Sequence record: OQ828465.1
Strand: one strand, 5' to 3'
DNA length: 64,000 nt
Of this stretch, positions 34,756-59,608 are shown one piece after another; the first letter of the stretch is position 1, and the number at the start of each line of letters is the position of its first letter. The translations under genes were made by a program, and so were the position numbers. The notes under the pieces were generated by a model. The model saw only the letters and a list, made by a program, of their open reading frames with translations. It made no database searches and was not told where the DNA came from.

Positions 34756-34968
34756 ATGTCAAATTCATTTAAAGCCGGTGACAAAGTTGTAGTCAATACA
34801 GATATTATTAATAGCACCGGTGAATGCGGTTATGATCTTACACTATGTAAAGCTGGTACTGTAGTTATAATCGAATCTGTTAATGGAGACCATCTGTTAG
34901 TTTATCCATCTAATAGTGGTCCTAGTAATGGATTTTATGTTCATCTACATCAGGTTAATGCACAATGA
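34756..34968 (+). CDS. small SH3-like protein (paralog family)
   Basis: FKAGDKVVVNTDI...LCKAGTVVII. Confidence 0.75.
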   Translation: MSNSFKAGDKVVVNTDIINSTGECGYDLTLCKAGTVVIIESVNGDHLLVYPSNSGPSNGFYVHLHQVNAQ

Positions 34969-35706: not shown

Positions 35707-35749
35707 TACTTGACCGTCCAATTAGATAGTTATAGGACGGGAATTAACC

Positions 35750-36085
35750 ATGTTTATAGTTGATGATAAGTGTTATAGTTGGTCAAGTACTTCGCACGGT
35801 CGTGGGAAAAGAAGCGAAATAGTTGGAGCAGGTGTTTATGTTATTGAACACATTGCAACTGGGAAGTATTTGGTAGGGCTTTCAAAGACTGTTAGTAATG
35901 AAGTTGATAAACATATCGCTGCATTACGTAATAATAGTCATCAAAATAAGGCAATGTTAGGTTTAGTACATCGGGACATGGATTTACGTTTATTAGAATA
36001 TCCCATTAGTAAGGTTAGTGATCAAAAAGCACTTATTGCTAAGATCCGAGCCACTACTGAACCTAAATATTTAATGCTTAATTAG
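35750..36085 (+). CDS. GIY-YIG-like domain protein, degenerate
   Basis: GVYVIEHIATGKYLVGLS ... H...LRNNSHQN; no Arg at the usual catalytic position. Confidence 0.7.
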   Translation: MFIVDDKCYSWSSTSHGRGKRSEIVGAGVYVIEHIATGKYLVGLSKTVSNEVDKHIAALRNNSHQNKAMLGLVHRDMDLRLLEYPISKVSDQKALIAKIRATTEPKYLMLN

Positions 36086-46505: not shown

Positions 46506-46919
46506 ATGGCTAGTCAACTTATCGTAGTTGATTTACAAAATCCTAGAAATAAACATATATACAGTGAACTAACTCATGAACATCCTAGAACAATAACATC
46601 ACATCTAGTTGAAGAATTAGATGATTTTGATGTTCATCAATATTCATACCAAGCGGAGTATAAGTCTGGGATTGATCTTAGATTAATATTCTTTTGGGAT
46701 GGACCATACACTGAACCAAGAGAAGAAGGTTATGAACCAACTGATCTAGAGAAAAAGTGTGTGAAGTTGTGTAGGCAATATGAGGTTGCGATTAACGGGC
46801 AATTATCTGTAGTTGATCACTCTCGGTTCCGGACGGTGTGTACCTTCAGATCAGATAATAGTTTACCAACAACTTTAGACTGGATTCATAAAGAACCCCC
46901 ATCTAAAGAGGTTGTGTAA
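46506..46919 (+). CDS. hypothetical protein
   Basis: 137 aa ORF. Confidence 0.8.
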   Translation: MASQLIVVDLQNPRNKHIYSELTHEHPRTITSHLVEELDDFDVHQYSYQAEYKSGIDLRLIFFWDGPYTEPREEGYEPTDLEKKCVKLCRQYEVAINGQLSVVDHSRFRTVCTFRSDNSLPTTLDWIHKEPPSKEVV

Positions 46920-46948
46920 AAAATAGTAAAAGAAATACACTATTCTAT

Positions 46949-47050
46949 GTAGTTCCTTTACGATTGCTCTTTTATCTTAGTTTCAGTTTTGCTGAAGAAG
47001 TACCAATGAGATACCCTCCCCTGATCGGGGAGGGTTTTTGACATCTAAGA
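46949..47050 (+). ncRNA. candidate late sRNA, 5' end complementary to the nrdB RBS
   Basis: TATGTAG at 46946, U-rich non-coding body, terminator ccctcccc-tgatc-ggggaggg-ttttt. Confidence 0.45.
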
Positions 47051-47060
47051 GGAAAATATA

Positions 47061-47441
47061 ATGTGCAAACAACATCGTGTAGTATCTATGAAAGTTACAT
47101 GCACGCAAGCTCGCTATCCGATCGGTCTGCGCGATCTCGGATTTGATAATGCTGCTGATGCTCGGCAATATCTACTAGATGTCGTTGAGTACAATATGGA
47201 TCGTCTCCACCCGCAACATGCTAATACATTCCAGCTACAAAATCTACAAGACGGGTTCGTAGTATCCTACGATATCGAAAAAGATGGATCCGTTTATCTT
47301 CGGTTAACACTGGCGGCTGTAGCTTATCAATCAATCGATCTTGAGTTGGGGGTTACCGTTAAAGAAAATGAAGGGATCAGTGTTGTAATCAAAAATTGGA
47401 TCAATGGTGATTATACTGCGGGGAACAAATACTTGCAGTAA
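47061..47441 (+). CDS. hypothetical protein
   Basis: 126 aa, GAGGA RBS. Confidence 0.8.
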   Translation: MCKQHRVVSMKVTCTQARYPIGLRDLGFDNAADARQYLLDVVEYNMDRLHPQHANTFQLQNLQDGFVVSYDIEKDGSVYLRLTLAAVAYQSIDLELGVTVKENEGISVVIKNWINGDYTAGNKYLQ

Positions 47442-47449
47442 TACCATAT

Positions 47450-47570
47450 GTAAAGAATACCCAAATCGGGATCTCCCGGACTATCTCCCTTCAGCGTTCC
47501 CGTCCGCAAATGAAGGTGCCGCCGAGATCCCACCTATTGATAATGCCCTCCCTTCGGGGAGGGCTTTATT
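47450..47570 (+). ncRNA. candidate structured GC-rich ncRNA
   Basis: TAC-N14-TATGTA promoter as for tRNAs, nested stems 47468-47531, UUCG terminator 47545-47564. Confidence 0.6.
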
Positions 47571-47607
47571 TCGCTTAAGCCTATTTATTTTATTATAAGG
47601 AGTGAAA

Positions 47608-48339
47608 ATGACATATATCGTAAATGATGGTAAAGTCATGATTGCAGACTGCCTATTAATTGAGCGGAATAATGCAACTGATAGCATTGGGCGACTTCCA
47701 GTATTAGATAACGGTTATATTGATCTAACTGCTAAAGCTGAAGGTGTAGATGTATATTACAATGATTGCCACAAGATAATTTTTCATCCGACTGTTACTT
47801 GGCAAGGCAAACGTGTTAAAACTATGGCTTTTGCTGGAACTATAGATAATGTTTATGATCTATTGAATGCCCTTACCGCAGGTGTTGATTTAGCTGATTG
47901 GTTTAAAGTTGAAGTAAATATCTTGCCAGTCATAGAACGCAGGTTGTTTAATGGTAATACTTCTATGATGTTCACTATGGAGAATGGTGACATATATACA
48001 GTTATTCTTAAAGACATGGGTATCAACATCACCAAGAAAGATTGGGCTCATTTGGGTAGTGGTGTAGATGCAGTTAATAGTGTACTTGAGTTTATCCCTA
48101 ATTGTAATGATAATGGATCAACCAAACTAACTGCACTTGAAGCATTTGCTATTGCATGTGCACATACTACTACTGTAAGTCGTAAATTTGATTATTACAT
48201 CCATGCTACAGGTGAGTACAAGCAAAATCAAGAACTATCAACTAAACAACTAAAATGGATACTAGCGCGCATTCAAAAGCGGATGGATCTTACCCGCATT
48301 TTCAATGACCGCGAATATGCCAATAACATATGGGGTTGA
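47608..48339 (+). CDS. Ntn-hydrolase (HslV/proteasome beta-like) protein
   Basis: M-T start; TYIVNDGKVMIAD, MAFAG, HLGSG, ALEAFAIA. Confidence 0.55.
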   Translation: MTYIVNDGKVMIADCLLIERNNATDSIGRLPVLDNGYIDLTAKAEGVDVYYNDCHKIIFHPTVTWQGKRVKTMAFAGTIDNVYDLLNALTAGVDLADWFKVEVNILPVIERRLFNGNTSMMFTMENGDIYTVILKDMGINITKKDWAHLGSGVDAVNSVLEFIPNCNDNGSTKLTALEAFAIACAHTTTVSRKFDYYIHATGEYKQNQELSTKQLKWILARIQKRMDLTRIFNDREYANNIWG

Positions 48340-48860
48340 TTTGTATGAGTAATTCTAATATGGATATGCTATATTACACTAATGTAAATTGGGAGCAATA
48401 TTTTCATCATGTGAAACAACGTGCAGATGATACTGTTAAAGTAATGTATAAACCTGAATATGAAGATCTTATTGATGAAGCATGTAGGCCATTAATTAAA
48501 TGGTTTAATCAATTTACCAATGTTGCAACTATTTATTGCTGTTCAGGCCATGTTGATGAAGAAACTGGTGGTAGCCCTGGATACATTAGTCTTTTATTTA
48601 AAGATACCAATGCAGAGAATTCTGCAATGCGTTTATTGCGTGAAGCAATGTGTAAGGGGCGTGAGTGTAAGATCCCATTCGAAATTGAACTGGGGGCTTA
48701 TTTCGGGCATCTACATGAGACCATTGATCAGAATCACTGGGTCGCCAATCTAGTCATCCGCACCAATAGCTACAAACGTAAAAATACGTATGATCGCTAT
48801 TGGCATCGTCTTTACAATATCATAACAACATGTAATACTGAGGGTTTATACACCGTCTAA
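48330..48860 (+). CDS. TYW3-like domain protein
   Basis: LIDEACRPLIKWFN...TIYCCSGH...PGYISLLF. Confidence 0.6.
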   Translation: MGLICMSNSNMDMLYYTNVNWEQYFHHVKQRADDTVKVMYKPEYEDLIDEACRPLIKWFNQFTNVATIYCCSGHVDEETGGSPGYISLLFKDTNAENSAMRLLREAMCKGRECKIPFEIELGAYFGHLHETIDQNHWVANLVIRTNSYKRKNTYDRYWHRLYNIITTCNTEGLYTV

Positions 48861-48878
48861 AAAATCTGAGATAATTTA

Positions 48879-49028
48879 ATGAATGATATTAAAAATACAT
48901 TATTAGTTAGATTAGAGAGGAAACAAAAAGCTAAGCGTATAGATAAATTACAAAGACTAGGTTTATGGTTTATTCTATTGCTATGTGTATCTAATCTATT
49001 TGTCCAATTAATAAAAGGTATATTCTAA
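48879..49028 (+). CDS. 49 aa membrane microprotein
   Basis: read by hand; basic N-half and C-terminal LGLWFILLLCVSNLFVQLIKGIF. Confidence 0.55.
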   Translation: MNDIKNTLLVRLERKQKAKRIDKLQRLGLWFILLLCVSNLFVQLIKGIF

Positions 49029-49709
49029 ATGGCAGAAAAGCTCAGTTTTGCTGATATATTTAAGATGGCTAAAGAGGAAAATGTTAAGCTTGAATTGCAT
49101 TGTCTAATTGGTACTCGACCAGTTAGGGGTCTTATTAAAAGTTTAAACTTTAATTCAATCAGACCTGATATATGTGAATCTGTTAATTTATATGTAAATG
49201 TATTTTCTAAAGTAGTAGAGGCTAGAGTAGATCTATCAAGTACTACTGCTGATTATGGTTGCTGGAGAATGACGCCAGAAACTAAGAATTATGTAGATAG
49301 TAAATATAACTTACCAGAAAAAATTGATATCACTAATCCAGATATCGTTAGGAGTAATATTAATTATTACCTCAGTTTACCTACTAAGGAACGCACTGAG
49401 TTATTTAATAAAATAAATAATCCTAATGTCATTGAGGCAATAAACAAAGAATGGTCTAAAATGGTTGTAGAGTATTATCAATTTGAGATCGATTCGTTTA
49501 TTGGATTAATTGATTTCGATCATGTCCTTATCAGTAAGTTCATGGTATTTAACTGGATGGATGATCTGTTTGAATATGCTTTAAATATCCCATTAAAACA
49601 AACCAATACAGTAAATGAAGGCACCTGTTGCTTACTGGTTCACAAAGATAAAAAGGCAACATATACCCATTTTACTGATATTAAAAATCTTATCAAAGTA
49701 AGTGTATAA
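49029..49709 (+). CDS. hypothetical protein
   Basis: 226 aa ORF. Confidence 0.85.
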   Translation: MAEKLSFADIFKMAKEENVKLELHCLIGTRPVRGLIKSLNFNSIRPDICESVNLYVNVFSKVVEARVDLSSTTADYGCWRMTPETKNYVDSKYNLPEKIDITNPDIVRSNINYYLSLPTKERTELFNKINNPNVIEAINKEWSKMVVEYYQFEIDSFIGLIDFDHVLISKFMVFNWMDDLFEYALNIPLKQTNTVNEGTCCLLVHKDKKATYTHFTDIKNLIKVSV

Positions 49710-49718
49710 TTACGGCAT

Positions 49719-49760
49719 AAACCCCTCTCCATACGGAGAGGGGATATGTCTTTATTTTTT
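49719..49760. terminator. terminator at the convergent strand switch
   Basis: cccctctcc-atac-ggagagggg between converging genes. Confidence 0.75.
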
Positions 49761-49769
49761 TATTTAAAC

Positions 49770-50159
49770 TCACTTAGAAAAATCTTCTACTGGAATATCA
49801 TCCAGCCAATCATTAAGTAGTTTAAATTGATGAGGGTGTTGCATCTTAGTAACTTTACCATACTTAACACTAACTGCTTTACCAGTAGACACGGCAAGAT
49901 CAACTAGTTTCTTTTCATATGCATTAAACTCATCATACCACCGAGTATGAATAAGTTTTGCTAGGCGATCGTAAGCCGTCTTTCGATAATGATCTTCTTG
50001 TTCGCGACGCTGTTCGTCAAGTAGTTCTTTTTGACGTTGTTCTTGCTGACGCTTTTCTTCTTCCTTTTTCTCTTTCTCTAGTCGTTTCTTCTCAGCAAAA
50101 TATGATAGAACCGGTAGTTTGAAAAGTAGGCTTAGAAGTAGTTGAAAGAATTGTTTCAT
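49770..50159 (-). CDS. charged coiled-coil protein with amphipathic N-terminus
   Basis: ATG 50159 after GAGGA; own TAC-N14-TATGTA promoter (+1 about 50217). Confidence 0.8.
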   Translation of the reverse strand: MKQFFQLLLSLLFKLPVLSYFAEKKRLEKEKKEEEKRQQEQRQKELLDEQRREQEDHYRKTAYDRLAKLIHTRWYDEFNAYEKKLVDLAVSTGKAVSVKYGKVTKMQHPHQFKLLNDWLDDIPVEDFSK

Positions 50160-50239
50160 TAGTATTTCCTCAGTTTGATTAAATAGATAATTTACAAATG
50201 GCAATCCGCCTAGTTACATACTAGATAGCTGTAAGTATT

Positions 50240-50650
50240 TTAATCCGTTACAATGTCTGGATAACGTTCATCAATTAATGATTTTCTATATGCAAACTCA
50301 CGCACCTCTGCTTCTAATTTTTCTTTAGTTGCATCTGTAGCACCGATCACAATAATTGAATCATTATTAATTGATAACTCTACGTCATTATCTTTTCCAA
50401 ATACTAATTTAAAAACAGTATTTAATTCATCTAATTGATCTTGAACGGTTACTGTATCATCATGGATTGCCCTAGACGGTTCCTCTAATAGACCCTCTAG
50501 CACTTTATAAGACTTTATAAAAAGAGTATCATTAAAATCTTCTTTTAACCATGTTAATTCAAGTGTATATAAATCAACCACTCTATTAAGATTTGAAGTA
50601 GTTATATCTGTTTTCCATTCATAACCTAGATAGTTAGTTTCATTACTCAT
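50240..50650 (-). CDS. hypothetical protein
   Basis: 136 aa, AGGAG RBS. Confidence 0.8.
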   Translation of the reverse strand: MSNETNYLGYEWKTDITTSNLNRVVDLYTLELTWLKEDFNDTLFIKSYKVLEGLLEEPSRAIHDDTVTVQDQLDELNTVFKLVFGKDNDVELSINNDSIIVIGATDATKEKLEAEVREFAYRKSLIDERYPDIVTD

Positions 50651-50692
50651 TATAAACTCCTTTGATTAATACATATTAAATAATCTGGAGTA

Positions 50693-50869
50693 TTATTTCT
50701 TTGTAATGCGATAACCAACTGACCATAAATCTATACGGACGAAACCTTTTCCCTCATGTTGACCGTATAAACATACACGTAACATTCTATTACCTGGCTT
50801 CATATCAATTCGTGTTACCTCAAATTTATTAGTAATGTATTCTTGGATGATAAATAATAGATGACTCAT
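50693..50869 (-). CDS. 58 aa hypothetical protein
   Basis: read by hand: MSHLLFIIQEYITNKFEVTRIDMKPGNRMLRVCLYG...; AGGA RBS. Confidence 0.6.
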   Translation of the reverse strand: MSHLLFIIQEYITNKFEVTRIDMKPGNRMLRVCLYGQHEGKGFVRIDLWSVGYRITKK

Positions 50870-50998
50870 TTTATATTTTCCTGATTAATGACAAACATAA
50901 GCCCCTCCATATGGAGGGGCAATATGATTTACTGAGTCTTTCGCGTTCAATCCCATCCTAACTAATATATTTAAGAATAGTTTAAACCTCAGTAAATT

Positions 50999-51075
50999 TG
51001 GTGCCGCCACTCCGAATCGAACGGAGGACCTACGCATTACAAGTGCGTTGCTCTACCTAGCTGAGCTATAGCGGC
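50999..51075 (-). tRNA. tRNA-Thr(TGT)
   Basis: cloverleaf GCCGCTA...TGT...GTTCGA...CCA encoded. Confidence 0.95.
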
Positions 51076-51222
51076 GGAATCTTCTACATATAGTGTATAT
51101 GAAAGTATTATTTTATTTATTATAATAAATAAAGTTATATTCAAACATATTTAAACAGTATATCATTAACTTGATATTACTAAAAGTAATATTTTCTATT
51201 AATTGTAAATAGGATACTAAAT

Positions 51223-51360
51223 ATGAATATTGATCCAAAAACTCTTGGCATTATTATTAGCACCACTATTGGCACCGTAGGTGCTCTTATTCTTACGTAT
51301 GGTATTGCGAGAGCAGTACGTTGGAATAATAAACCTGATGTAAAAGATGTAGCAGAGTAA
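51223..51360 (+). CDS. 45 aa membrane microprotein in an inverted early cassette
   Basis: AGGA RBS, TM LGIIISTTIGTVGALILTYGIA; early-type promoter 51141-51166; hairpin 51373-51395. Confidence 0.7.
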   Translation: MNIDPKTLGIIISTTIGTVGALILTYGIARAVRWNNKPDVKDVAE

Positions 51361-51417
51361 GATAACATAAAGCTAGCCCATTAGGGGCTAGCTCTTATAT
51401 TTATTTTTTTATTTGTT

Positions 51418-52047
51418 TTAACTTAGAGTACTATAATAAATAAATTTAGTTAATTCATCTTGTTGCTCTTTGATTATATTATTTTTCGTTTGTTTAACAT
51501 TAATGTAATATTCAATAAATAACCAACGTCTATCATGTTTGGCTAAGTCTTTGAATTCAATTTTCTCAAATCGCCATGACTGTACAGTAGTCCTAATGAG
51601 ATTACCGGATTTATTGATAATATACCCTTGCATGGTGTTAATTTGATCATCGATAGTAGGCGTTGGTAAAAATATCAAATAAACACCATCTGTATTTTTA
51701 GTGTGCATACTTTTTAATTTATACATCATTGGGTTAAAGTATTCATCACTTTTATGATAATCGCTTAATTCTAACACAGCATCAATCATCATTTTAGCGC
51801 TTTCAGTAACACCAACATTTAGTAAATAATCATTAAGCTCTTTTAATGAATTATCTGTAAGTGATGCATCTATGTGTTCTTCACTTATAGGTTCATTATA
51901 AACTAGTTTATTAATAGTTGAATTAACAATATTTAGCCTATCGATATCATAAACTGCTAGTGTTTGTTTACCAACATTTATTTTTAAGTCTTTACCTGAT
52001 TCATTGATAAAATCATTTAAATCTACTTCAGTAAAATGAAAAGCCAT
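51418..52047 (-). CDS. hypothetical protein
   Basis: 209 aa, AAGG RBS. Confidence 0.85.
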   Translation of the reverse strand: MAFHFTEVDLNDFINESGKDLKINVGKQTLAVYDIDRLNIVNSTINKLVYNEPISEEHIDASLTDNSLKELNDYLLNVGVTESAKMMIDAVLELSDYHKSDEYFNPMMYKLKSMHTKNTDGVYLIFLPTPTIDDQINTMQGYIINKSGNLIRTTVQSWRFEKIEFKDLAKHDRRWLFIEYYINVKQTKNNIIKEQQDELTKFIYYSTLS

Positions 52048-52206
52048 TTTTATACACCTTTATGTTTTCCGTAGTGTTAAATTTTATTAACACCCGGTTT
52101 CAAGTTGAGTTATGTGTAGAACTAATCTACAAATAATATTAACTCTATGTATAATTTTACTTATAAATAGACCACTCTATATAGAGGGGTATTAAGTCAT
52201 ATAAAG

Positions 52207-52302
52207 TTATTTTAGTGTGGGTCTAAATACAAACATTACGTCTACTTCATCAGTTGGGTCGACATCATATTCTGTCCCAGTATTATCAATCGCAACCAAC
52301 AT
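52207..52302 (-). CDS. 31 aa acidic microprotein
   Basis: GAGGA 8 nt upstream; MLVAIDNTGTEYDVDPTDEVDVMFVFRPTLK; hairpin 52172-52191 follows. Confidence 0.5.
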   Translation of the reverse strand: MLVAIDNTGTEYDVDPTDEVDVMFVFRPTLK

Positions 52303-52518
52303 TCTCACATTCCTCGGTAAAGGGCTTTATGTGATTTAGATAGGCGAGTGATAAAATACCTAAATGCACTGAGATATTCTCTGATAAATCCTTTACCTTT
52401 ATTAAAATTATCACCTACATGGACCATTCAATCACTTTTATGTAGCTTGATTTCAATCAATTAAAGGGTATAACGAATGTAATGTATTTATACACGAATA
52501 TAGTTATCATAAGCTCAA

Positions 52519-52809
52519 CTACTTGGGGTAAAAGAGTGGACGGAGATCAGTCTCATGGTATTCATCTTTGATATGGGAAAAGTACTTATTGAAATTATCC
52601 ACACTATACGAAGTTCTAAGCCCATTTGGCCAAATCACTAACATGTCACCAACTTCGAATGCCGTGATCATAGCCTCAAAGTCTTTTATGTTTACATGAT
52701 CATTACCAAGTTTCACGAATCGACATGCACGGAAACCACATTCCCAGTCAGACGACATCCATTGACCAGCCTCAGTAATCAGCTTTGCACGAACTAATGT
52801 CTTAGCCAT
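52519..52809 (-). CDS. hypothetical protein
   Basis: 96 aa ORF. Confidence 0.75.
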   Translation of the reverse strand: MAKTLVRAKLITEAGQWMSSDWECGFRACRFVKLGNDHVNIKDFEAMITAFEVGDMLVIWPNGLRTSYSVDNFNKYFSHIKDEYHETDLRPLFYPK

Positions 52810-52987
52810 ACTTGGTACCCCAGTTTATCGTTTTGTCGAGAAGAGCTTGACTAGGTCGTTTATTACGAATCTGATTCTTAATAGACTCATTTAGCTCTTC
52901 CATCGTTTTCCGAACTTTAACTAATCGTTCCTTTTGTTCATTTGTAGGAACACTACTAACTATATCTTGCAATGCTTTAAGTGACAT
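52802..52987 (-). CDS. hypothetical protein
   Basis: 61 aa, AGGG RBS. Confidence 0.7.
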   Translation of the reverse strand: MSLKALQDIVSSVPTNEQKERLVKVRKTMEELNESIKNQIRNKRPSQALLDKTINWGTKYG

Positions 52988-53118
52988 GTCTTTACCCTAT
53001 TTGTATTCAGCTATAAGATTCAACTACTGGGTACTTTTACAAGACGACATAAAGGCAGCATTAGCTGCCTTTATAGTTTACATAGTAGTGAAATATAACT
53101 AAATCTAAAACTATGAAT

Positions 53119-53194
<76 letters not shown>

Positions 53195-53355
53195 AGAATT
53201 ATGGCGATTTTATATTAGAGATGAGTTACTGACAACCTAATATAGATATGTAATAACTACATATTATTACAATCTGAGTATTATTTATTTCTTGTTATGA
53301 CATTATGTAAATAACGTGTAGTTAATCTTATTAGAAACTATCAAAGTTACTAATT

Positions 53356-53868
53356 CTAACTAAAACGAACCACCATTACCTCTGTACCAAAAGTATCTGC
53401 AACCCACTGGTTAAATTCTTTATCAGTGATACCGCGTAGGTTCAGATTAAATGAGGCATTGTCAACAAGAATATATTTTACAGACGATATTAATTCTTCT
53501 TTAATATCTTTTTGAATAGATGATTCCTCAGGTTGATGAATATATTTACGGAGTTGGTGTGTAATTAAACAAGAAACAATATTATCTTTAGCATTCTGGA
53601 ACTTAGCCAGTACAGCCTGTTTAATTTTATCTTCTACAAATACAGCTAGACATTCGCCAGGATGACGATTAGCAAACTCAATCAATGCAGTTGTACTACC
53701 ACATTGCCGACCTACAAATAATCCAACAGTCCTGTATTCACGAATAACAATATGACCAATAGAATTAGATCGATAATTAACCCAGTTCTCATTCGTTTTT
53801 TGAATTAAAGCATCTAGGATATCTTGGTACTTTACAATAGTTCTTACAAACTGATTAGAGTTAGTCAT
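53356..53868 (-). CDS. degenerate P-loop NTPase-like protein
   Basis: GRQCGSTT (Walker A-like, Lys replaced by Ser), YILVDNA (Walker B-like). Confidence 0.6.
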   Translation of the reverse strand: MTNSNQFVRTIVKYQDILDALIQKTNENWVNYRSNSIGHIVIREYRTVGLFVGRQCGSTTALIEFANRHPGECLAVFVEDKIKQAVLAKFQNAKDNIVSCLITHQLRKYIHQPEESSIQKDIKEELISSVKYILVDNASFNLNLRGITDKEFNQWVADTFGTEVMVVRFS

Positions 53869-54100
53869 AATAGACTCCTTTATTACAATGTAGCATAGAT
53901 TCAGTTTTTTAACTGGAATTAAATGCCGATTTTGAAAAGGTGATAAAACCTTTTCTCATCTATAAATGAATTTATAATAGTAACAATGAATATAACCAGG
54001 GGTGGCAAACCCCTGGCATTTAGACACACTCTATAATAAGTTCTACCACCGAGTGTGTTTAGTGGATAGATTTAAGAATACTTTATTATAGTACTCTTAC
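53869..54100 (-). ncRNA. structured 230 nt leader or ncRNA
   Basis: TAC-N14-TATGTA promoter (+1 54100) and at least five hairpins. Confidence 0.45.
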
Positions 54101-54152
54101 ATAATATCATCGTGCCAGTATAATTATCTAAATAGTTATAAATATTATTATT

Positions 54153-55160
54153 TTAATCAATGATTAATGGTGCTAGTTTTACCTGATAGATACCTGATAA
54201 CAATTGGCTTTTCAACATATATGCTCCACCACCAACTGGCATTTTAGATCCACCTACAATGATCATGCTATTATCCGGACCTTTAGCTATAGATGAAATA
54301 TTAAGGAATCCGATACCTAGTTCAAATGGTTCAGCCCATTTCCGGCGCCTAATATTAAAACGTTGTGCAAACATTTTAGTTACACCGCCGACATCAACAG
54401 CGTTAAGGTAATTAAAATAGTCCCCATCTACATAACCATTACCTTGCCAGATTGTTCCTTTATCAGCAGGTATAATCATCCAAGGTGTTTGCTCCCATAT
54501 TAAGGTAGTTGCATTATATCGATAAACTTCAAGATTAGGTATGTTCTTTGTATTATCCCAACCACCAAAATGGTAAAAGTAACCATTATAAAAGAATAAC
54601 TGTTGACCTGAACGAGCACCACCTGAATAGTCTTGCCCGCTAAGCCAAGACTTACTTGATGGTTTTAATCGCATTGCGTTTACGCCAATTGGGTTAACGC
54701 ATAGAATAAGATCATTACCATCTGATGCGGAGGCTGTGCCCCAAAGTGGTACGGGACCACTATATCGCTCAACCCTATTGCCTGTAGCTATATCAAAATG
54801 TTGTATAAAGTTAGATGTTCCCGTACCACCATTACCAGCCGAGTTCCATCCAGTAATACCGCCATAAACAATAAAGTTATTCTTATGTAATGTCCCAAAT
54901 CCTAAAGATACCCCTGGTAAGAATGTTCCAGAAGCAGTTGCACCTATATCGGCAAATGGCGATATGGTAAAACGTCTGAACACAGTTGCAGCTGTTTGTC
55001 CTTCAGTATGATGACCAGATCCAACATACAGTGTATTTCCATCCACATATGACATTGTACCAGCTAACGCTACAGGTAGATCACCTAATTTAATAATTTC
55101 ATTAAATCCAACCAAGGGTAACTCTTCGCCTATATCTGGTGATAATAGTAATTCAAACAT
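54153..55160 (-). CDS. Kelch-like beta-propeller protein, probably virion-associated
   Basis: repeated LYVGSG, FIVYGG, FYHFGG, MIIVGG blades; MFELLL N-terminus. Confidence 0.75.
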   Translation of the reverse strand: MFELLLSPDIGEELPLVGFNEIIKLGDLPVALAGTMSYVDGNTLYVGSGHHTEGQTAATVFRRFTISPFADIGATASGTFLPGVSLGFGTLHKNNFIVYGGITGWNSAGNGGTGTSNFIQHFDIATGNRVERYSGPVPLWGTASASDGNDLILCVNPIGVNAMRLKPSSKSWLSGQDYSGGARSGQQLFFYNGYFYHFGGWDNTKNIPNLEVYRYNATTLIWEQTPWMIIPADKGTIWQGNGYVDGDYFNYLNAVDVGGVTKMFAQRFNIRRRKWAEPFELGIGFLNISSIAKGPDNSMIIVGGSKMPVGGGAYMLKSQLLSGIYQVKLAPLIID

Positions 55161-55244
55161 GAGTGTGCTCTCAAGTAAATCATTTTAATTCATAAGATAA
55201 CCCATGGCAACATAAAAGAGTAGCCGAAGCTACTCTTTAGAATA

Positions 55245-55320
<76 letters not shown>

Positions 55321-55326
55321 ATTAAA

Positions 55327-55403
55327 TGGCGCGCCCAAGGGGACTCGAACCCCTGACCACCCGCGTGACAGGCGGGTATTCTAACCAACTGAACTATGAG
55401 CGC
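55327..55403 (-). tRNA. tRNA-Asp(GTC)
   Basis: 77 nt cloverleaf with CCA. Confidence 0.95.
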
Positions 55404-55455
55404 AAACGTATGGACATGACTTCCTACATAGTATTACATAACCAGTAATATTTTA

Positions 55456-55803
55456 TTACGGGCGATCAGTCCAGTGCTTGAAATAGTTACCATCCTTGGG
55501 ACGATCGTACTTAGCAAGAATATTTTTAAGTTCTTCGCCGGACAACTTAATACTATCGCCTACTGGGCTATCCAGTTCAGGGCAAGGTTCAGTTTTACGT
55601 GTAATGATTAAATTATCAGTCCCATCTTTGAAGATAAAGATAAACTGCGTTTCATTAGCACTAATCTTTTTCTTAACGCAATGCTTTACTTCTGGATGTT
55701 TCTTGTGGATCGCTACAAAAGATTCAACAAGAGTTAGCTTTATAAACTCAGGGCTAATAAATGTGAAATATACAGCGCTCTGCGTTGGGGTTAGATGATC
55801 CAT
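55456..55803 (-). CDS. hypothetical protein
   Basis: 115 aa ORF. Confidence 0.8.
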   Translation of the reverse strand: MDHLTPTQSAVYFTFISPEFIKLTLVESFVAIHKKHPEVKHCVKKKISANETQFIFIFKDGTDNLIITRKTEPCPELDSPVGDSIKLSGEELKNILAKYDRPKDGNYFKHWTDRP

Positions 55804-55805
55804 AT

Positions 55806-56093
55806 TTACTCCGTATGTTTGAGATAGGCTTTAACTGCTTTAAGACCTTTATTAAAGAACATAGCTTCAACATAAGTAATGTTACTTACATCCTCGCCGA
55901 TAAGTTCCCATTTGATGCAACGTGTAACAGCGTTGATTGTAATATCTAATCCGTTTGGGAATAGGGTTACTTCATCGGTCAGGTGAATCCAATCGGGAGC
56001 CTTCGCTCCATTACGTAAACGGGGACTAAAAGTAAGATTATAAAGTGTTTGTAATGGTTGTCTCAATAGTTCTTTTTGTTCTTGATGTTCCAT
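55806..56093 (-). CDS. hypothetical protein
   Basis: ATG 56093 after AGGA. Confidence 0.75.
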   Translation of the reverse strand: MEHQEQKELLRQPLQTLYNLTFSPRLRNGAKAPDWIHLTDEVTLFPNGLDITINAVTRCIKWELIGEDVSNITYVEAMFFNKGLKAVKAYLKHTE

Positions 56094-56101
56094 GTATTTT
56101 C

Positions 56102-56323
56102 CTAGAGACATTTAAAAATATAAATAGAATGGTTATCTCTTTCGGTTATCTTTAGAGTATTCTCATTTCGAATAACTTCAAGAGACTTGTATTTATGTTC
56201 CAGAATATCCAGATGAGAAATACACTGTTCCCTATTTTCAAATAGGATATTACTTTCATTAGTCGAAATGAAACCAAATAATCCAACTTTGATAGATAAT
56301 ACCAACATTATTACTGTATTCAT
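56102..56323 (-). CDS. small exported Cys-pair protein, similar to 14062..14319
   Basis: ATG 56323 after GAGGA; hydrophobic N-terminus, LFENREQCISHL ... IFKCL. Confidence 0.7.
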   Translation of the reverse strand: MNTVIMLVLSIKVGLFGFISTNESNILFENREQCISHLDILEHKYKSLEVIRNENTLKITERDNHSIYIFKCL

Positions 56324-56375
56324 GTTTTCCTCAATGAGACAGTATAAAACCTCCCCCAAGTGGGAGGCTAGTGTA

Positions 56376-56452
56376 TGGTGGGCCCAGCAGGACTTGAACC
56401 TGCGACCAAGCGATTATGAGTCGCCTGCTCTAACCAACTGAGCTATAGGCCC
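56376..56452 (-). tRNA. tRNA with CAT anticodon, most likely tRNA-Ile2 (lysidine type)
   Basis: 77 nt; anticodon arm GGCGACTCATAATCGCT matches recalled E. coli ileX; paired 1:72. Confidence 0.85.
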
Positions 56453-56458
56453 TTTTAT

Positions 56459-56752
56459 TTATTCTGGTAGGAATGTTCCGTCTTTTTGACGGACTAATAC
56501 ACCTGACCATTTGAATGTATTTGTATCACTAACAGGGCACTCTCTAATTACATTGGTTCTAAATGTGCCATGTGGATAGGTTACAGTGAATGTAATATGG
56601 TTATTACAAACATGTAATACAGAAGACTTTGCTTCTGTTAGATAGTGTAAGCCTTGAGCTAATTGAATATTAGTTAATTCAGGGTCACTAAGAATAGCGT
56701 AAAGAGCTGTTCCTATAATTTGATGTTCCCATGATATCCATTTATTATCCAT
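56459..56752 (-). CDS. hypothetical protein between tRNA genes
   Basis: 97 aa ORF. Confidence 0.75.
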   Translation of the reverse strand: MDNKWISWEHQIIGTALYAILSDPELTNIQLAQGLHYLTEAKSSVLHVCNNHITFTVTYPHGTFRTNVIRECPVSDTNTFKWSGVLVRQKDGTFLPE

Positions 56753-56773
56753 CCTATTTACCTATTATTAAAA

Positions 56774-56849
56774 TGGTCGGAGTGGGGAGACTCGAACTCC
56801 CGACATCCTGCTCCCAAAGCAGGCGCGCTACCAACTGCGCTACACTCCG
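56774..56849 (-). tRNA. tRNA-Pro(TGG)
   Basis: 76 nt cloverleaf with CCA. Confidence 0.95.
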
Positions 56850-56858
56850 TATTTAAAT

Positions 56859-56943
56859 TGGTGCCCGAAGTCGGATTCGAACCGACAAGACCGTAGCCGG
56901 AAGATTTTAAGTCTTCTGTGTTTACCAATTTCACCATTCGGGC
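56859..56943 (-). tRNA. tRNA-Leu(TAA)
   Basis: 85 nt with long variable arm and CCA. Confidence 0.95.
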
Positions 56944-56957
56944 ATTGTGCTTCAATA

Positions 56958-56985
56958 CATAACATGTAATGCTAGGTATTTTATT
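56958..56985 (-). promoter_or_regulatory. nvRNAP-type promoter of the Leu-Pro-ORF-Ile2 unit
   Basis: aaaaTAC-ctagcattacatgt-TATGta; same spacing at 47430, 50237, 51107, 53280, 54120, 55447. Confidence 0.7.
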
Positions 56986-57001
56986 ACAACTTATTTTAAA
57001 T

Positions 57002-57454
57002 TCAACGTGGCCATTGTAAAGAAGTTATCTTATTACCATTAATGTAGACATCGGTCACTTCGCACCAATCATTAATTCTGTGTTCAATAATTGGAACATC
57101 ATTTCGGCCAGCCACTCCAATCATATTCCATTTAACATAAATATTCATTAGATCAATTGTTAATTTCTCTTTTATGAGTTTAGGAGAAATTAATTTAATA
57201 TTATTAATGTTAAAGAAGTAATTATTAACTTCTTCTAAATATTCATTAGTATTAGTAGTACTAACTTTGCCTTCATGTTCAAGTGAGGATGGTTTATTCT
57301 GATTTACAATATTGCTCACTAGACTTCTTAAAACGGCACTTGCCCTACCAGCTTCGCGTCTTTTATACTTATCATAGTCTTTTACATTAGCTGCAATTTT
57401 ATCAAATTCTTTTTGGGCATAGATTAGCCCTGGTAAAAGTTCATTTTTGATCAT
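57002..57454 (-). CDS. hypothetical protein
   Basis: 150 aa ORF. Confidence 0.8.
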   Translation of the reverse strand: MIKNELLPGLIYAQKEFDKIAANVKDYDKYKRREAGRASAVLRSLVSNIVNQNKPSSLEHEGKVSTTNTNEYLEEVNNYFFNINNIKLISPKLIKEKLTIDLMNIYVKWNMIGVAGRNDVPIIEHRINDWCEVTDVYINGNKITSLQWPR

Positions 57455-57509
57455 TTTATAATTACTCTATGTTGTTTATACATATTTTAATATACATACG
57501 TAAAAACAA

Positions 57510-57652
57510 AATATAAAGCCTCCCCGAAGGGAGGCGATATATCGTCATTAATGCCCAGCAAAGAGTTTTACTCTCTGGGAGCCAGTTGGAAGGGGGACTG
57601 GCTCCGATCTATTATGACTAATGTAGAAACAAGGGGGAGGGATTATTTCTAC
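57510..57652 (-). ncRNA. candidate late sRNA with C-rich hairpin loops
   Basis: TATGTAG start, three hairpins, UUCG terminator 57518-57535 with U-tract on the - strand. Confidence 0.55.
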
Positions 57653-57667
57653 ATAATATTAGATACA

Positions 57668-59608
57668 TTACTGGTAGTTTTCATTACCCATTGCTAACCT
57701 ACCTTTTATAGACCGATCTACCCATTTTGCGGCGGCCTCCATGATATCAATGAATGAGTGGTATTGCCGCATTTTATTAACTTCCATCACATCATCATCA
57801 ATCCCAGGGCCAAAGCATGCGAATAACAAATCATTCCAATCATAGTAATCGATACCAGCTATTGGACTAGGGTTATCCAACATATCGTAGATTAGTCCTT
57901 CCAGTGGATCTGGTAAATCAGGGAACTTGAAGCTAAGAGTTATCTGACGTTCCAATGCCGATATAATTAAGTTCATGGCCTTAGCTGCTTCTTCTTCAGT
58001 AAGAGCTTTGAGTTTACTATCAGTAGATGGATATTTCGCGACCACGGTGCGAGGTGAATTATAGGTACCCTTACCTGTAATAGTACCGGCAGGCCATTTA
58101 ACACTAGTCTTGAATCCAGCACGTGCCTTGTCTACGATAGCCTTTGCTTCTTTGTATACGTTAGCGTCTAGGTTATGTGCATTCTTAATGAGTAGATCCA
58201 ATGCAGGTTTAGTCTTCTGCCTGTAAGACTCCATTTCGCGATTAGACTTTTCTTCGAGTTTGAAGAATGGTTCTACTGCACGAATGGCATCCTCGATACT
58301 GACTTTACCATTAATACTCAGTACGTTAGCTATACCATTACTATTGATATCGCCAGTAACGAATACCTGCTTATTAAGCCATTGTGGATTGCCAAATGTA
58401 GATTCTAGTTGTTCCAGAAATCCTCTTGCACTGGACGATGAACGCCAGATACGTTTCTGATCACCTCGATTAGAAATGCCAAGAACTTTTTTGATTGAAT
58501 CGATAAGACCTTCATTTGAGACTTGTATAAAACCGGGAGTATTAATGATGGACTTCTCTACATACCCGCCACGAATAACCCGATTTATAAAACCATTAAG
58601 ACCACTACCAGTTTCGGCCATATCTTTCATGATTTCTATATTCGTTTCACCGGCACTTTGGGCATTGTATAAATAATAAGAACCATCTTTGAATTTCAGT
58701 ATAATCCAGTCATCCCCAGTTAGATATGAATCAATATTACTATCATTCATACTTTGATATTTAATGAATTCTGGATTAGTACTTAATACTTCTTCAATGA
58801 ATTCTTCTAATGCCGCAGAATTATTAATAGCATCAACCGGTAGAATTTCACCATCAATGGGTTCAGTAGTTGGACCAGTAACAATGGCAGGTAACGGATC
58901 CTCCTCTACAATAACAGTTTCTTCCACTGGTAGAGCACCGCAAGATAAATCAATTAGTTTATTAAAACTACTAATGATCTCACCAAGTGCTACAAGAACT
59001 GCTGGCTGTTCAACTTGTTCAACTTTAGCAATACCAGTTTCTGTAAATTCTTCAGTAATTCGGTTATAGACTTCCACTAATTGATTAGTAAGCTCTGCTA
59101 CTTTTGGCAGAGTCTGCTTAGACAGAGGTTCAACTACAGTTGTATCTGCTTCAACAAAAATAGAGTCATCTTCTTCTAAACGGCTAGTATTAGCTGAGCC
59201 AGCTGTGAAGTTATAAGGCATATCTTGAATTACTTCATTAATTTCAGATGCCTCCATATCTTCATTTAGACGACCACTATAAGTACGCATCATACCTTCT
59301 GCTTCTTTAATAGTGGAATGCGCTAAGCGTCCCCAATCACCACGCATAATACCGCGCTCGGTAAGACCGCGTGCAGCTGAACCAAGATCAATAGGTTCTT
59401 CAATAAATGATTGTTCTTCAACCCACTCCTCATTACTGTAACATTCTTTTAGAATGGTTTTAAATTTAGTACTAAAGGGTTGTAGAATCTTTTTATCTAC
59501 TTGTTCAACATTTGTTTTAAAGTGTTCTAGACTTGGTGTAGCTTTTGAAGATACTTTTTCAGTACCGCTATATAGCGTACGGTTTAGGAAGTTTAGCATT
59601 TTATTCAT
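57668..59608 (-). CDS. internal head protein (phiKZ gp303-like) with KTSC-like module
   Basis: 646 aa; S/A/G-x-E processing-like motifs (ASE, SNEGLIDSIKK, GNE); position next to nrdB. Confidence 0.7.
   Translation of the reverse strand: MNKMLNFLNRTLYSGTEKVSSKATPSLEHFKTNVEQVDKKILQPFSTKFKTILKECYSNEEWVEEQSFIEEPIDLGSAARGLTERGIMRGDWGRLAHSTIKEAEGMMRTYSGRLNEDMEASEINEVIQDMPYNFTAGSANTSRLEEDDSIFVEADTTVVEPLSKQTLPKVAELTNQLVEVYNRITEEFTETGIAKVEQVEQPAVLVALGEIISSFNKLIDLSCGALPVEETVIVEEDPLPAIVTGPTTEPIDGEILPVDAINNSAALEEFIEEVLSTNPEFIKYQSMNDSNIDSYLTGDDWIILKFKDGSYYLYNAQSAGETNIEIMKDMAETGSGLNGFINRVIRGGYVEKSIINTPGFIQVSNEGLIDSIKKVLGISNRGDQKRIWRSSSSARGFLEQLESTFGNPQWLNKQVFVTGDINSNGIANVLSINGKVSIEDAIRAVEPFFKLEEKSNREMESYRQKTKPALDLLIKNAHNLDANVYKEAKAIVDKARAGFKTSVKWPAGTITGKGTYNSPRTVVAKYPSTDSKLKALTEEEAAKAMNLIISALERQITLSFKFPDLPDPLEGLIYDMLDNPSPIAGIDYYDWNDLLFACFGPGIDDDVMEVNKMRQYHSFIDIMEAAAKWVDRSIKGRLAMGNENYQ

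Follow-up and report, generated by a model that had tools for sequence, protein, structure and literature searches.

Near the right end of the genome of a phiKZ-type Pseudomonas jumbo phage, three non-coding stretches each carry the start motif TATGTA followed by an intrinsic terminator, which raises the question of whether they form one set of regulatory RNAs or are separate parts of the operons around them. We analysed a stretch of 64,000 nucleotides from sequence record OQ828465.1 (hereafter the window, to whose positions and + or - strand the coordinates refer unless phiKZ is named), which is the terminal 64 kb of PA_ZH1. With the Pseudomonas phages PaZh_1, PA_ZH1 and KEN19 the window shares 100% identity, and with phiKZ 99.4%. 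Units 1 and 2 (+) are placed among an open reading frame (ORF) at 46506-46919, where the phiKZ annotation holds only the shorter PHIKZ287.1, and the genes PHIKZ288 and PHIKZ289. Unit 3 (-) lies between PHIKZ303, coding for a head structural protein, and PHIKZ302, the first gene of the tRNA cluster. An original prediction had described the three as a coordinated late set of small RNAs (sRNAs) resembling the anti-Shine-Dalgarno (anti-SD) sequence, a system of a form not known before. We consider it probable that they are instead leader and 3' untranslated region (3'UTR) RNAs made at leaky terminators, and that they do not constitute one coordinated class.

The Three Units Correspond to Mapped Transcripts of phiKZ

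The elements seen in the sequence are real: each unit has its TATGTA start and an intrinsic terminator with a G+C hairpin and a U-run. The phiKZ transcriptome data, to which the original prediction had pointed as the place to check, contain all three. After conversion of coordinates (window position + 215721 for units 1 and 2, + 216497 for unit 3), the units are a base-exact match to transcripts mapped in phiKZ by cappable sequencing on the Oxford Nanopore Technologies platform (ONT-cappable-seq; Putzeys et al. 2024, microLife, PMC10914365; tables in the bioRxiv supplement). In Table S7 of that work they are rows among the "5'UTR-derived ncRNA candidates" (non-coding RNAs), of which phiKZ has 17. 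Thus, they are short primary transcripts that had already been catalogued, and the idea of an undescribed system had to be given up.

In unit 1, the TATGTA at 46946-46951 (+) is phiKZ promoter P129, with the transcription start site (TSS) at 46949/46950. The RNA covers 46950-47039 (+), about 89-90 nt, and is listed in Table S7 as 262671-262760 in phiKZ, that is, from the TSS to the transcription termination site (TTS), as transcription unit TU196 of 89 nt; TU197 is its read-through form. Its terminator at 47013-47040 (+) is T118, of the intrinsic class with -17.8 kcal/mol, and reads CCCUCCCC-UGAUC-GGGGAGGG followed by a U-run, with a G+C stem of nine pairs. A terminator scan of the window did not list this element, although both the fold and the published T118 show it.

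The start motif of unit 2 at 47447-47452 (+) is P130 (phiKZ TSS 263172), and its RNA at 47451-47572 (+), about 120 nt, is TU198 of Table S7 (263172-263292, 120 nt), which forms the gp288 3'UTR and the gp289 5' leader. It ends at T119 (phiKZ TTS 263292), an intrinsic terminator at 47545-47564 (+). Unit 3 starts at a TATGTA at 57655-57650 (-), P144 (phiKZ TSS 274148), and its RNA of 141-142 nt at 57651-57510 (-), a free-standing unit that is also the gp303 3'UTR, corresponds to TU237 (274148-274007, 141 nt). Its terminator at 57535-57518 (-) is T131 (phiKZ TTS 274007), common to the gp303-304 operon. This RNA is the example of Figure 6B in Putzeys et al. 2024 (PMC10914365), where it was confirmed by northern blot with JVO-21409.

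The primary 5' ends captured by cappable-seq are placed at window positions 46950, 47451 and 57651 (phiKZ 262671, 263172 and 274148). For all three, the 3' end is given by a mapped terminator less than 250 nt downstream and before the next gene, with matching hairpins in the window. Inside the RNAs there are only short ORFs lacking a clear Shine-Dalgarno (SD) sequence, and the candidates of Putzeys et al. 2024 (PMC10914365) had been screened for SD-preceded ORFs (at least 10 codons, canonical SD).

A 64-codon ORF at 47404-47598 (+) spans unit 2, and it could be argued that this unit codes for a small protein, since the frame is annotated in KEN19 and KEN49, among several records, and is open in the relative T2P too, with 72 codons. 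However, its ATG lies 47 nt 5' of the mapped TSS and has no clear SD, the frame runs through the terminator hairpin, and of the T2P changes in the hairpin region two are non-synonymous and one is synonymous. Together with the screen mentioned above and the strongly non-random fold of the RNA (-46.6 kcal/mol, z -4.9), this makes a coding role highly improbable. The small hypothetical proteins of GenBank over 57551-57697 (+, antisense to unit 3) and 47404-47598 (+, unit 2) are probably over-calls on RNA loci.

Each Unit Is 3'UTR, Leader and Small RNA

T118, T119 and T131 also end the upstream operons (TU194, TU195 and TU238): TU194 and TU195 run from the upstream promoter P128 to T118 and T119, and TU238 runs from P145 to T131 across gp303-304. 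P129 and P130 are the sole mapped promoters ahead of gp288 and gp289. Therefore, the three roles of 3'UTR, terminated 5' leader and small RNA coincide in each stretch. Read-through was observed from each start, with TU197 extending from P129 to T119 across gp288, TU198 reading on into PHIKZ289, and TU233 extending from P144 to T127 across gp302 and the tRNAs. The original prediction had named the case of units that are only untranslated regions of neighbouring mRNAs as the one that would speak against it. This case applies in part: units 1 and 2 carry the leaders of gp288 and gp289, and all three terminators are those of upstream genes as well, but the short transcripts are real.

According to the reading that we favour, the phage RNA polymerase would start at a TATG-type promoter a few bases past the upstream stop codon and would reach, about 90-140 nt further on, an intrinsic terminator that also closes the upstream mRNA. 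The majority of transcripts would end there and accumulate as a small structured RNA, while the remainder would read through into gp288, gp289, or gp302 and the tRNA cluster. The role that the transcript maps show is thus an architectural one, in which such a leaky terminator would both insulate the adjoining transcription units and set the expression of the genes downstream.

A terminator within the 5'UTR together with a read-through isoform that reaches the downstream gene, as seen in TU197, TU198 and TU233, is a trait of riboswitch and attenuator leaders. No antiterminator alternative was found in the nascent RNAs, in which the 5' half of the terminator is unpaired (units 1 and 2) or engaged in a weak 4-bp pairing (unit 3), and searches against Rfam returned tRNAs and noise only (the whole window at gathering threshold, the three loci at E up to 1). 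This makes a switch of the riboswitch type unlikely. Folding of the read-through leaders with their start regions gave a low-probability pairing with the gp288 SD as the sole sign of a cis anti-SD, and none for gp289.

The Promoters Fall into Different Classes

The published core of the late promoters used by the non-virion RNA polymerase (nvRNAP) of phiKZ is TATG, from -3 to +1 (PMC7618050). This core was found at all three starts, 27 nt (unit 1), 6 nt (unit 2) and 13 nt (unit 3) past the upstream stop codon (that of gp288 for unit 2 and of gp303 for unit 3), and in unit 1 the TATGTA is unchanged in six divergent relatives. The hexamer alone is no evidence of a start, with 63 copies seen in the window versus 85 expected. 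Its density is 2.41/kb in sense-strand intergenic DNA (18 copies over 7.5 kb) versus 0.46/kb in coding DNA, a five-fold difference. This overall depletion with intergenic enrichment fits selection against stray starts of the phage polymerase within genes.

The late-type core at all three starts speaks for the idea of a coordinated late set of anti-SD sRNAs, acting in trans to retune translation or termination of phage and host mRNAs at the early-to-late switch. So does the fact that P129, P130 and P144 were unseen in prior mapping of early infection (reference column "-"). However, the promoter motif classes given by Putzeys et al. 2024 (PMC10914365) are early for P129, middle for P130 and late for P144, even though P129 has a late-type TATG and, despite its early class, resembles the published early promoters poorly. 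Among the three units we found no common timing, no common sequence or structure beyond the terminator stems and no antiterminator structure, and units 1 and 2 serve as leaders of downstream genes; the claim of a coordinated late set was accordingly not borne out.

The same span holds a fourth TATGTA-to-terminator unit at 54103-53990 (-), about 110 nt, which is the phiKZ ncRNA at 270595-270485, the PHIKZ297/298 RNA, validated by northern blot and Grad-seq. Its unpaired regions are A/U-rich and not pyrimidine-rich, and therefore pyrimidine-rich loops are no feature of a class of such units.

Units 2 and 3 Are Islands of Conservation

What is new here, compared with the published catalogue, are conservation islands at units 2 and 3, changes that keep their structure, and pyrimidine motifs that are mostly unpaired in prediction. 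Structure, exposure and duplex figures given throughout are predictions, and fold z-scores were calculated against shuffled sequences. Units 2 and 3 combine conservation with a stable fold, and unit 3 stands out as the best conserved of the RNAs.

Unit 3 folds with -50.1 kcal/mol (z -5.5) into hairpin 1 at 57624-57651 (-), with the loop UCCCUCCCCC at 57642-57633, hairpin 2 at 57578-57605 (-), with the loop CCCCCUUCCA at 57596-57587, and the terminator. Compared to T2P its identity is 99.3%, against 38% for the end of gp303 and 67% for gp302; in four further lineages it is 93-98%, so that values of 93-99% overall are found where the flanks show 38-90%. All nine unit 3 variants refold alike. In five of the nine, hairpin 1 shows compensation, with G8:C21 in place of A8:U21. 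Pairing is retained at three single changes, one terminal pair is broken, and the five remaining changes are at unpaired positions. In hairpin 2, both single changes of phage PA7 (MZ444140) leave the pairing intact.

Compared with most other genomes of Phikzvirus, identity at the 3' end of gp303 (57668-58067, -) is no more than about 38%. It breaks precisely at the promoter of unit 3, and a boundary of recombination at this conserved RNA is thus suggested.

In unit 2, a long irregular hairpin at 47468-47531 (+) with the apical loop UUCCCGUC at 47497-47504 is conserved. The body of the RNA is 94% identical to T2P, where the neighbouring genes show 78-82%, and all three T2P changes within the hairpin are at unpaired positions. 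T2P carries a different G+C hairpin in place of the terminator, and in KEN49 an insertion has moved the terminator to about 280 nt from the hairpin, which is intact. The KEN49 insertion itself (L014:1245-1545) is structured, about 280 nt long, located between the unit 2 hairpin and the terminator, and carries an annotated 44-codon ORF. It was considered as a mobile element and rejected as such, being found in that genome alone.

These data bear on the view that the short RNAs are functionless by-products, with TATG promoters arising easily in AT-rich intergenic DNA and hairpins that simply stabilise the 3' ends of upstream mRNAs. A promoter core of just 4-5 bp, the frequency of TATGTA in intergenic DNA and the use of all three terminators by upstream genes are consistent with it, as is the resemblance of unit 3 hairpin 1 to a terminator without its 3' half. 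On the other hand, little or nothing has changed in the TATG cores and RNA bodies while their flanks have strongly diverged, the changes observed keep the structure, and the unit 2 hairpin is kept in T2P and KEN49 though the terminator has been swapped or moved. For these reasons, we regard by-products as an unlikely explanation.

Homologues were confined to the genus Phikzvirus: blastn in distant mode found nothing beyond it save terminator-sized matches, and a search of the IMG/VR database returned phage PA7 alone. The neighbouring gp302 is restricted to the genus as well.

The C-rich Loops Probably Do Not Target Phage SD Sequences

Four of the five pyrimidine motifs that had been described as exposed were indeed predicted to be mostly unpaired (probability 0.89 for UUCCUUUAC, 0.99 for UUCCCGUC, 0.84 for CCCUCCCCCUU and 1.00 for CCCCUUCC); for CUAUCUCCCUUC the value was 0.53 only, because its CCUUC half lies in a stem. 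The anti-SD character of the exposed segments was assayed by calculating duplex energies of the five segments with 367 annotated start regions of PA_ZH1 (-25 to +10). The SD of this phage is of the AAGGA type and is present in 69 of the 367 regions.

Only part of the anti-SD claim held. The two loops of unit 3 paired worse than most of their own shuffles (94/130 and 127/130 shuffles paired better), since the C-runs do not match SDs of the AAGGA type. The unit 2 loop was not significant against the 367 regions, with 25/130 shuffles as good, and unit 1 alone was anti-SD-like, at a nominal level. For the unit 2 loop, the gene at 35750 was considered as a target, with pairing to its start region (10 bp, -19 kcal/mol, matched by 11/400 shuffles in the window), and rejected, since genome-wide 25/130 shuffles did as well and the site is outside the top sites. 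In the leader of that gene (35750-36085), ACCGUCC can pair with its own GGACGGG SD region (35710-35752, +), a possible built-in anti-SD hairpin.

A coordinated anti-SD set is thus very doubtful, even though most pyrimidine motifs are predicted to be free, units 2 and 3 are conserved more than their flanks and unit 1 matches ribosome-binding regions of the phage; the pairing results for units 2 and 3, the different promoter classes and the A/U-rich free regions of the fourth unit all argue against it.

The C-rich loops of units 2 and 3 are under selection, and their partner is probably something other than the AAGGA-type SDs of the phage. One proposal is that they dock a protein or a G-rich RNA, such as the GGGAGGG 3' halves of terminators, and so sponge up their partner or modulate termination or RNA stability. 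Over the genome, unit 3 pairs best with the G-rich 3' halves of phage terminators, and loop 1 has an exact 15-mer partner among them, GGGGAGGGAUUAUUU in L023. The loops are nearly invariant, hairpin 1 shows the compensatory change, and runs of C5 are 2.7-fold depleted genome-wide, yet the loops of unit 3 hold two at a distance of 41 nt. Nevertheless, once synthesised, the 3' half of a terminator is paired to its own 5' half within milliseconds, making invasion in trans kinetically unlikely, and no candidate protein was found. Moreover, nucleotides 4-17 of unit 3 are identical to the 5' half of a canonical terminator, and loop 1 may therefore be a terminator half without its former partner, in which case the complementarity would be trivial. 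Docking by these loops thus seems quite unlikely to us.

C5/G5 runs are otherwise depleted 2.7-fold in the PA_ZH1 genome (45 versus about 121 expected), and an intergenic sense-strand element of PA_ZH1 (L019:32545-32590) carries two G7 runs (GUGGGGGGGACCCUUUGGGGGGG).

Unit 1 Pairs in Silico with the nrdB Start Region

The 16S rRNA ends at its 3' side in ...CCUCCUUA. Unit 1 folds with -26.4 kcal/mol (z -2.6), due mostly to its terminator, and begins with an unstructured 5' tail, UAGUUCCUUUACGAUUG, at 46950-46966 (+), which contains the anti-SD-like UCCUUUA and has an unpaired probability of 0.89. Its candidate target is the ribosome-binding region of nrdB (PHIKZ305; identified by the Pfam family Ribonuc_red_sm), AAAUUGUAAAGGAACU at 61286-61271 (-), 4-19 nt 5' of the AUG. 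Tail and start region form a predicted duplex of 16 bp with -20.8 kcal/mol, an energy that was matched by 0/130 full shuffles and by 3/250 shuffles in which the anti-SD core was kept. Among the natural 17-mers located after a TATGT, about 745 in number, the tail takes third place. Over both strands of the whole genome nrdB is the best non-self site of the tail; the runner-up is also a start region, and the third-best start-region match is that of chimallin.

These modelled duplexes make unit 1 a plausible repressor that would pair with ribosome-binding regions of phage genes, nrdB being its best candidate. The pairing is a lead and not a finding: the transcripts with their ends, read-through, conservation and predicted structure are what the data show, and any function in trans is inferred. 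In a fuller version, the tail would mimic the 3' end of 16S rRNA and pair with the ribosome-binding regions of early and middle genes (nrdB first, then the PA_ZH1 gene at 76213 and chimallin), stopping their translation once the nvRNAP is active; this version we consider improbable as a whole.

The strongest trans match among all TATGT-proximal 17-mers was found elsewhere. At about 55194-55214 (-), the 17 nt past the TATGT 5' of the gene at 54153-55160 have a duplex energy of -25 kcal/mol with the PA_ZH1 start region belonging to the gene at 34848.

Several observations weigh against the reading of the three units as leader and 3'UTR RNAs with a pairing function for unit 1. Downstream of the unit 3 terminator, gp302 has its own TATGT promoter at 57480-57484 (-), phiKZ P143 (TSS 273977), which had been seen earlier by Wicke et al. 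according to the tables of Putzeys et al. 2024 (PMC10914365), and whose TATGT is retained in all variants; read-through from unit 3 is therefore unneeded for this gene. Nor does a role as terminator suffice to explain why the three unit 3 hairpins are conserved. As judged from the sequences compared, the conservation of unit 1 is uninformative, because the RNA, although invariant in relatives, lies within a broadly conserved block of 96-100% identity. The pairing with nrdB has a nominal p of about 0.004-0.012, which becomes about 0.02-0.05 when the five seeds are allowed for. No covariation supports it in relatives, where unit 1 is invariant and the target changes at the duplex edge only. Finally, the search for targets covered the phage genome only.

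Comparison with Known Systems

The closest relatives of the units are the phiKZ candidates of Putzeys et al. 2024 themselves, which have the same loci, starts, ends, lengths and sequences and show no structural difference; the window represents a 99.4%-identical relative of the PA_ZH1 type, and the paper proposes no function or targets for them. In the literature searched, no function or target was found for the three RNAs, nor any data on them from crosslinking and immunoprecipitation (CLIP) or co-immunoprecipitation (co-IP) with Hfq or ProQ.

With the Type I 3'UTR-derived sRNAs of enterobacteria (DapZ, MicL), the units share a promoter just past the upstream stop codon, a terminator common with the mRNA (TU194/195 and TU238) and a seed that is free at the 5' end or in a loop. 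They differ in being made by a phage RNA polymerase inside the phage nucleus and, for units 1 and 2, in doubling as leaders of the next gene. The C-rich, SD-pairing RNAs of Firmicutes with UCCC motifs, RsaE/RoxS and RNAIII, likewise expose C-rich motifs; in the phage RNAs, the hairpin loops of units 2 and 3 and the free tail of unit 1 present them. However, there is no homology, the C-runs of unit 3 do not fit AAGGA-type SDs, and only unit 1 is anti-SD-like in silico.

Leaders and attenuators with premature termination, as mapped by term-seq (Dar et al. 2016 type), also have a terminator within the 5'UTR and both short and read-through isoforms, but the phage units have neither an alternative antiterminator pairing nor a match to an Rfam riboswitch. 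Finally, PAK_P3 ncRNA1/2, phiKZ 5'UTR_gp40 and 3'UTR_PHIKZ298, and 201phi2-1 sRNA005 are abundant, UTR-associated and structured RNAs of virulent Pseudomonas phages without a known function, like the units described here, although they come from different loci and have no sequence similarity to them. PAK_P3 ncRNA1/2, listed as 3'UTR-derived in Table S7, have no start site of their own, unlike the three units.

Implications for Jumbo Phages

Jumbo phages such as phiKZ, which are candidates for phage therapy, transcribe their genes in a protein nucleus and translate them in the cytoplasm. To our knowledge, how the synthesis of their proteins is timed after mRNA export is largely unknown. The outcome of this analysis is that the three units are catalogued and heterogeneous, and that the anti-SD idea has been narrowed to a single pair that can be tested, namely the nrdB ribosome-binding region with unit 1. 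Should one of these abundant small RNAs indeed act in trans, an RNA layer would be added to the control of gene expression in these phages, together with a handle for phage engineering. Should unit 1 prove to repress translation by such pairing, it would be the first RNA of a nucleus-forming jumbo phage for which this kind of action in trans has been demonstrated.

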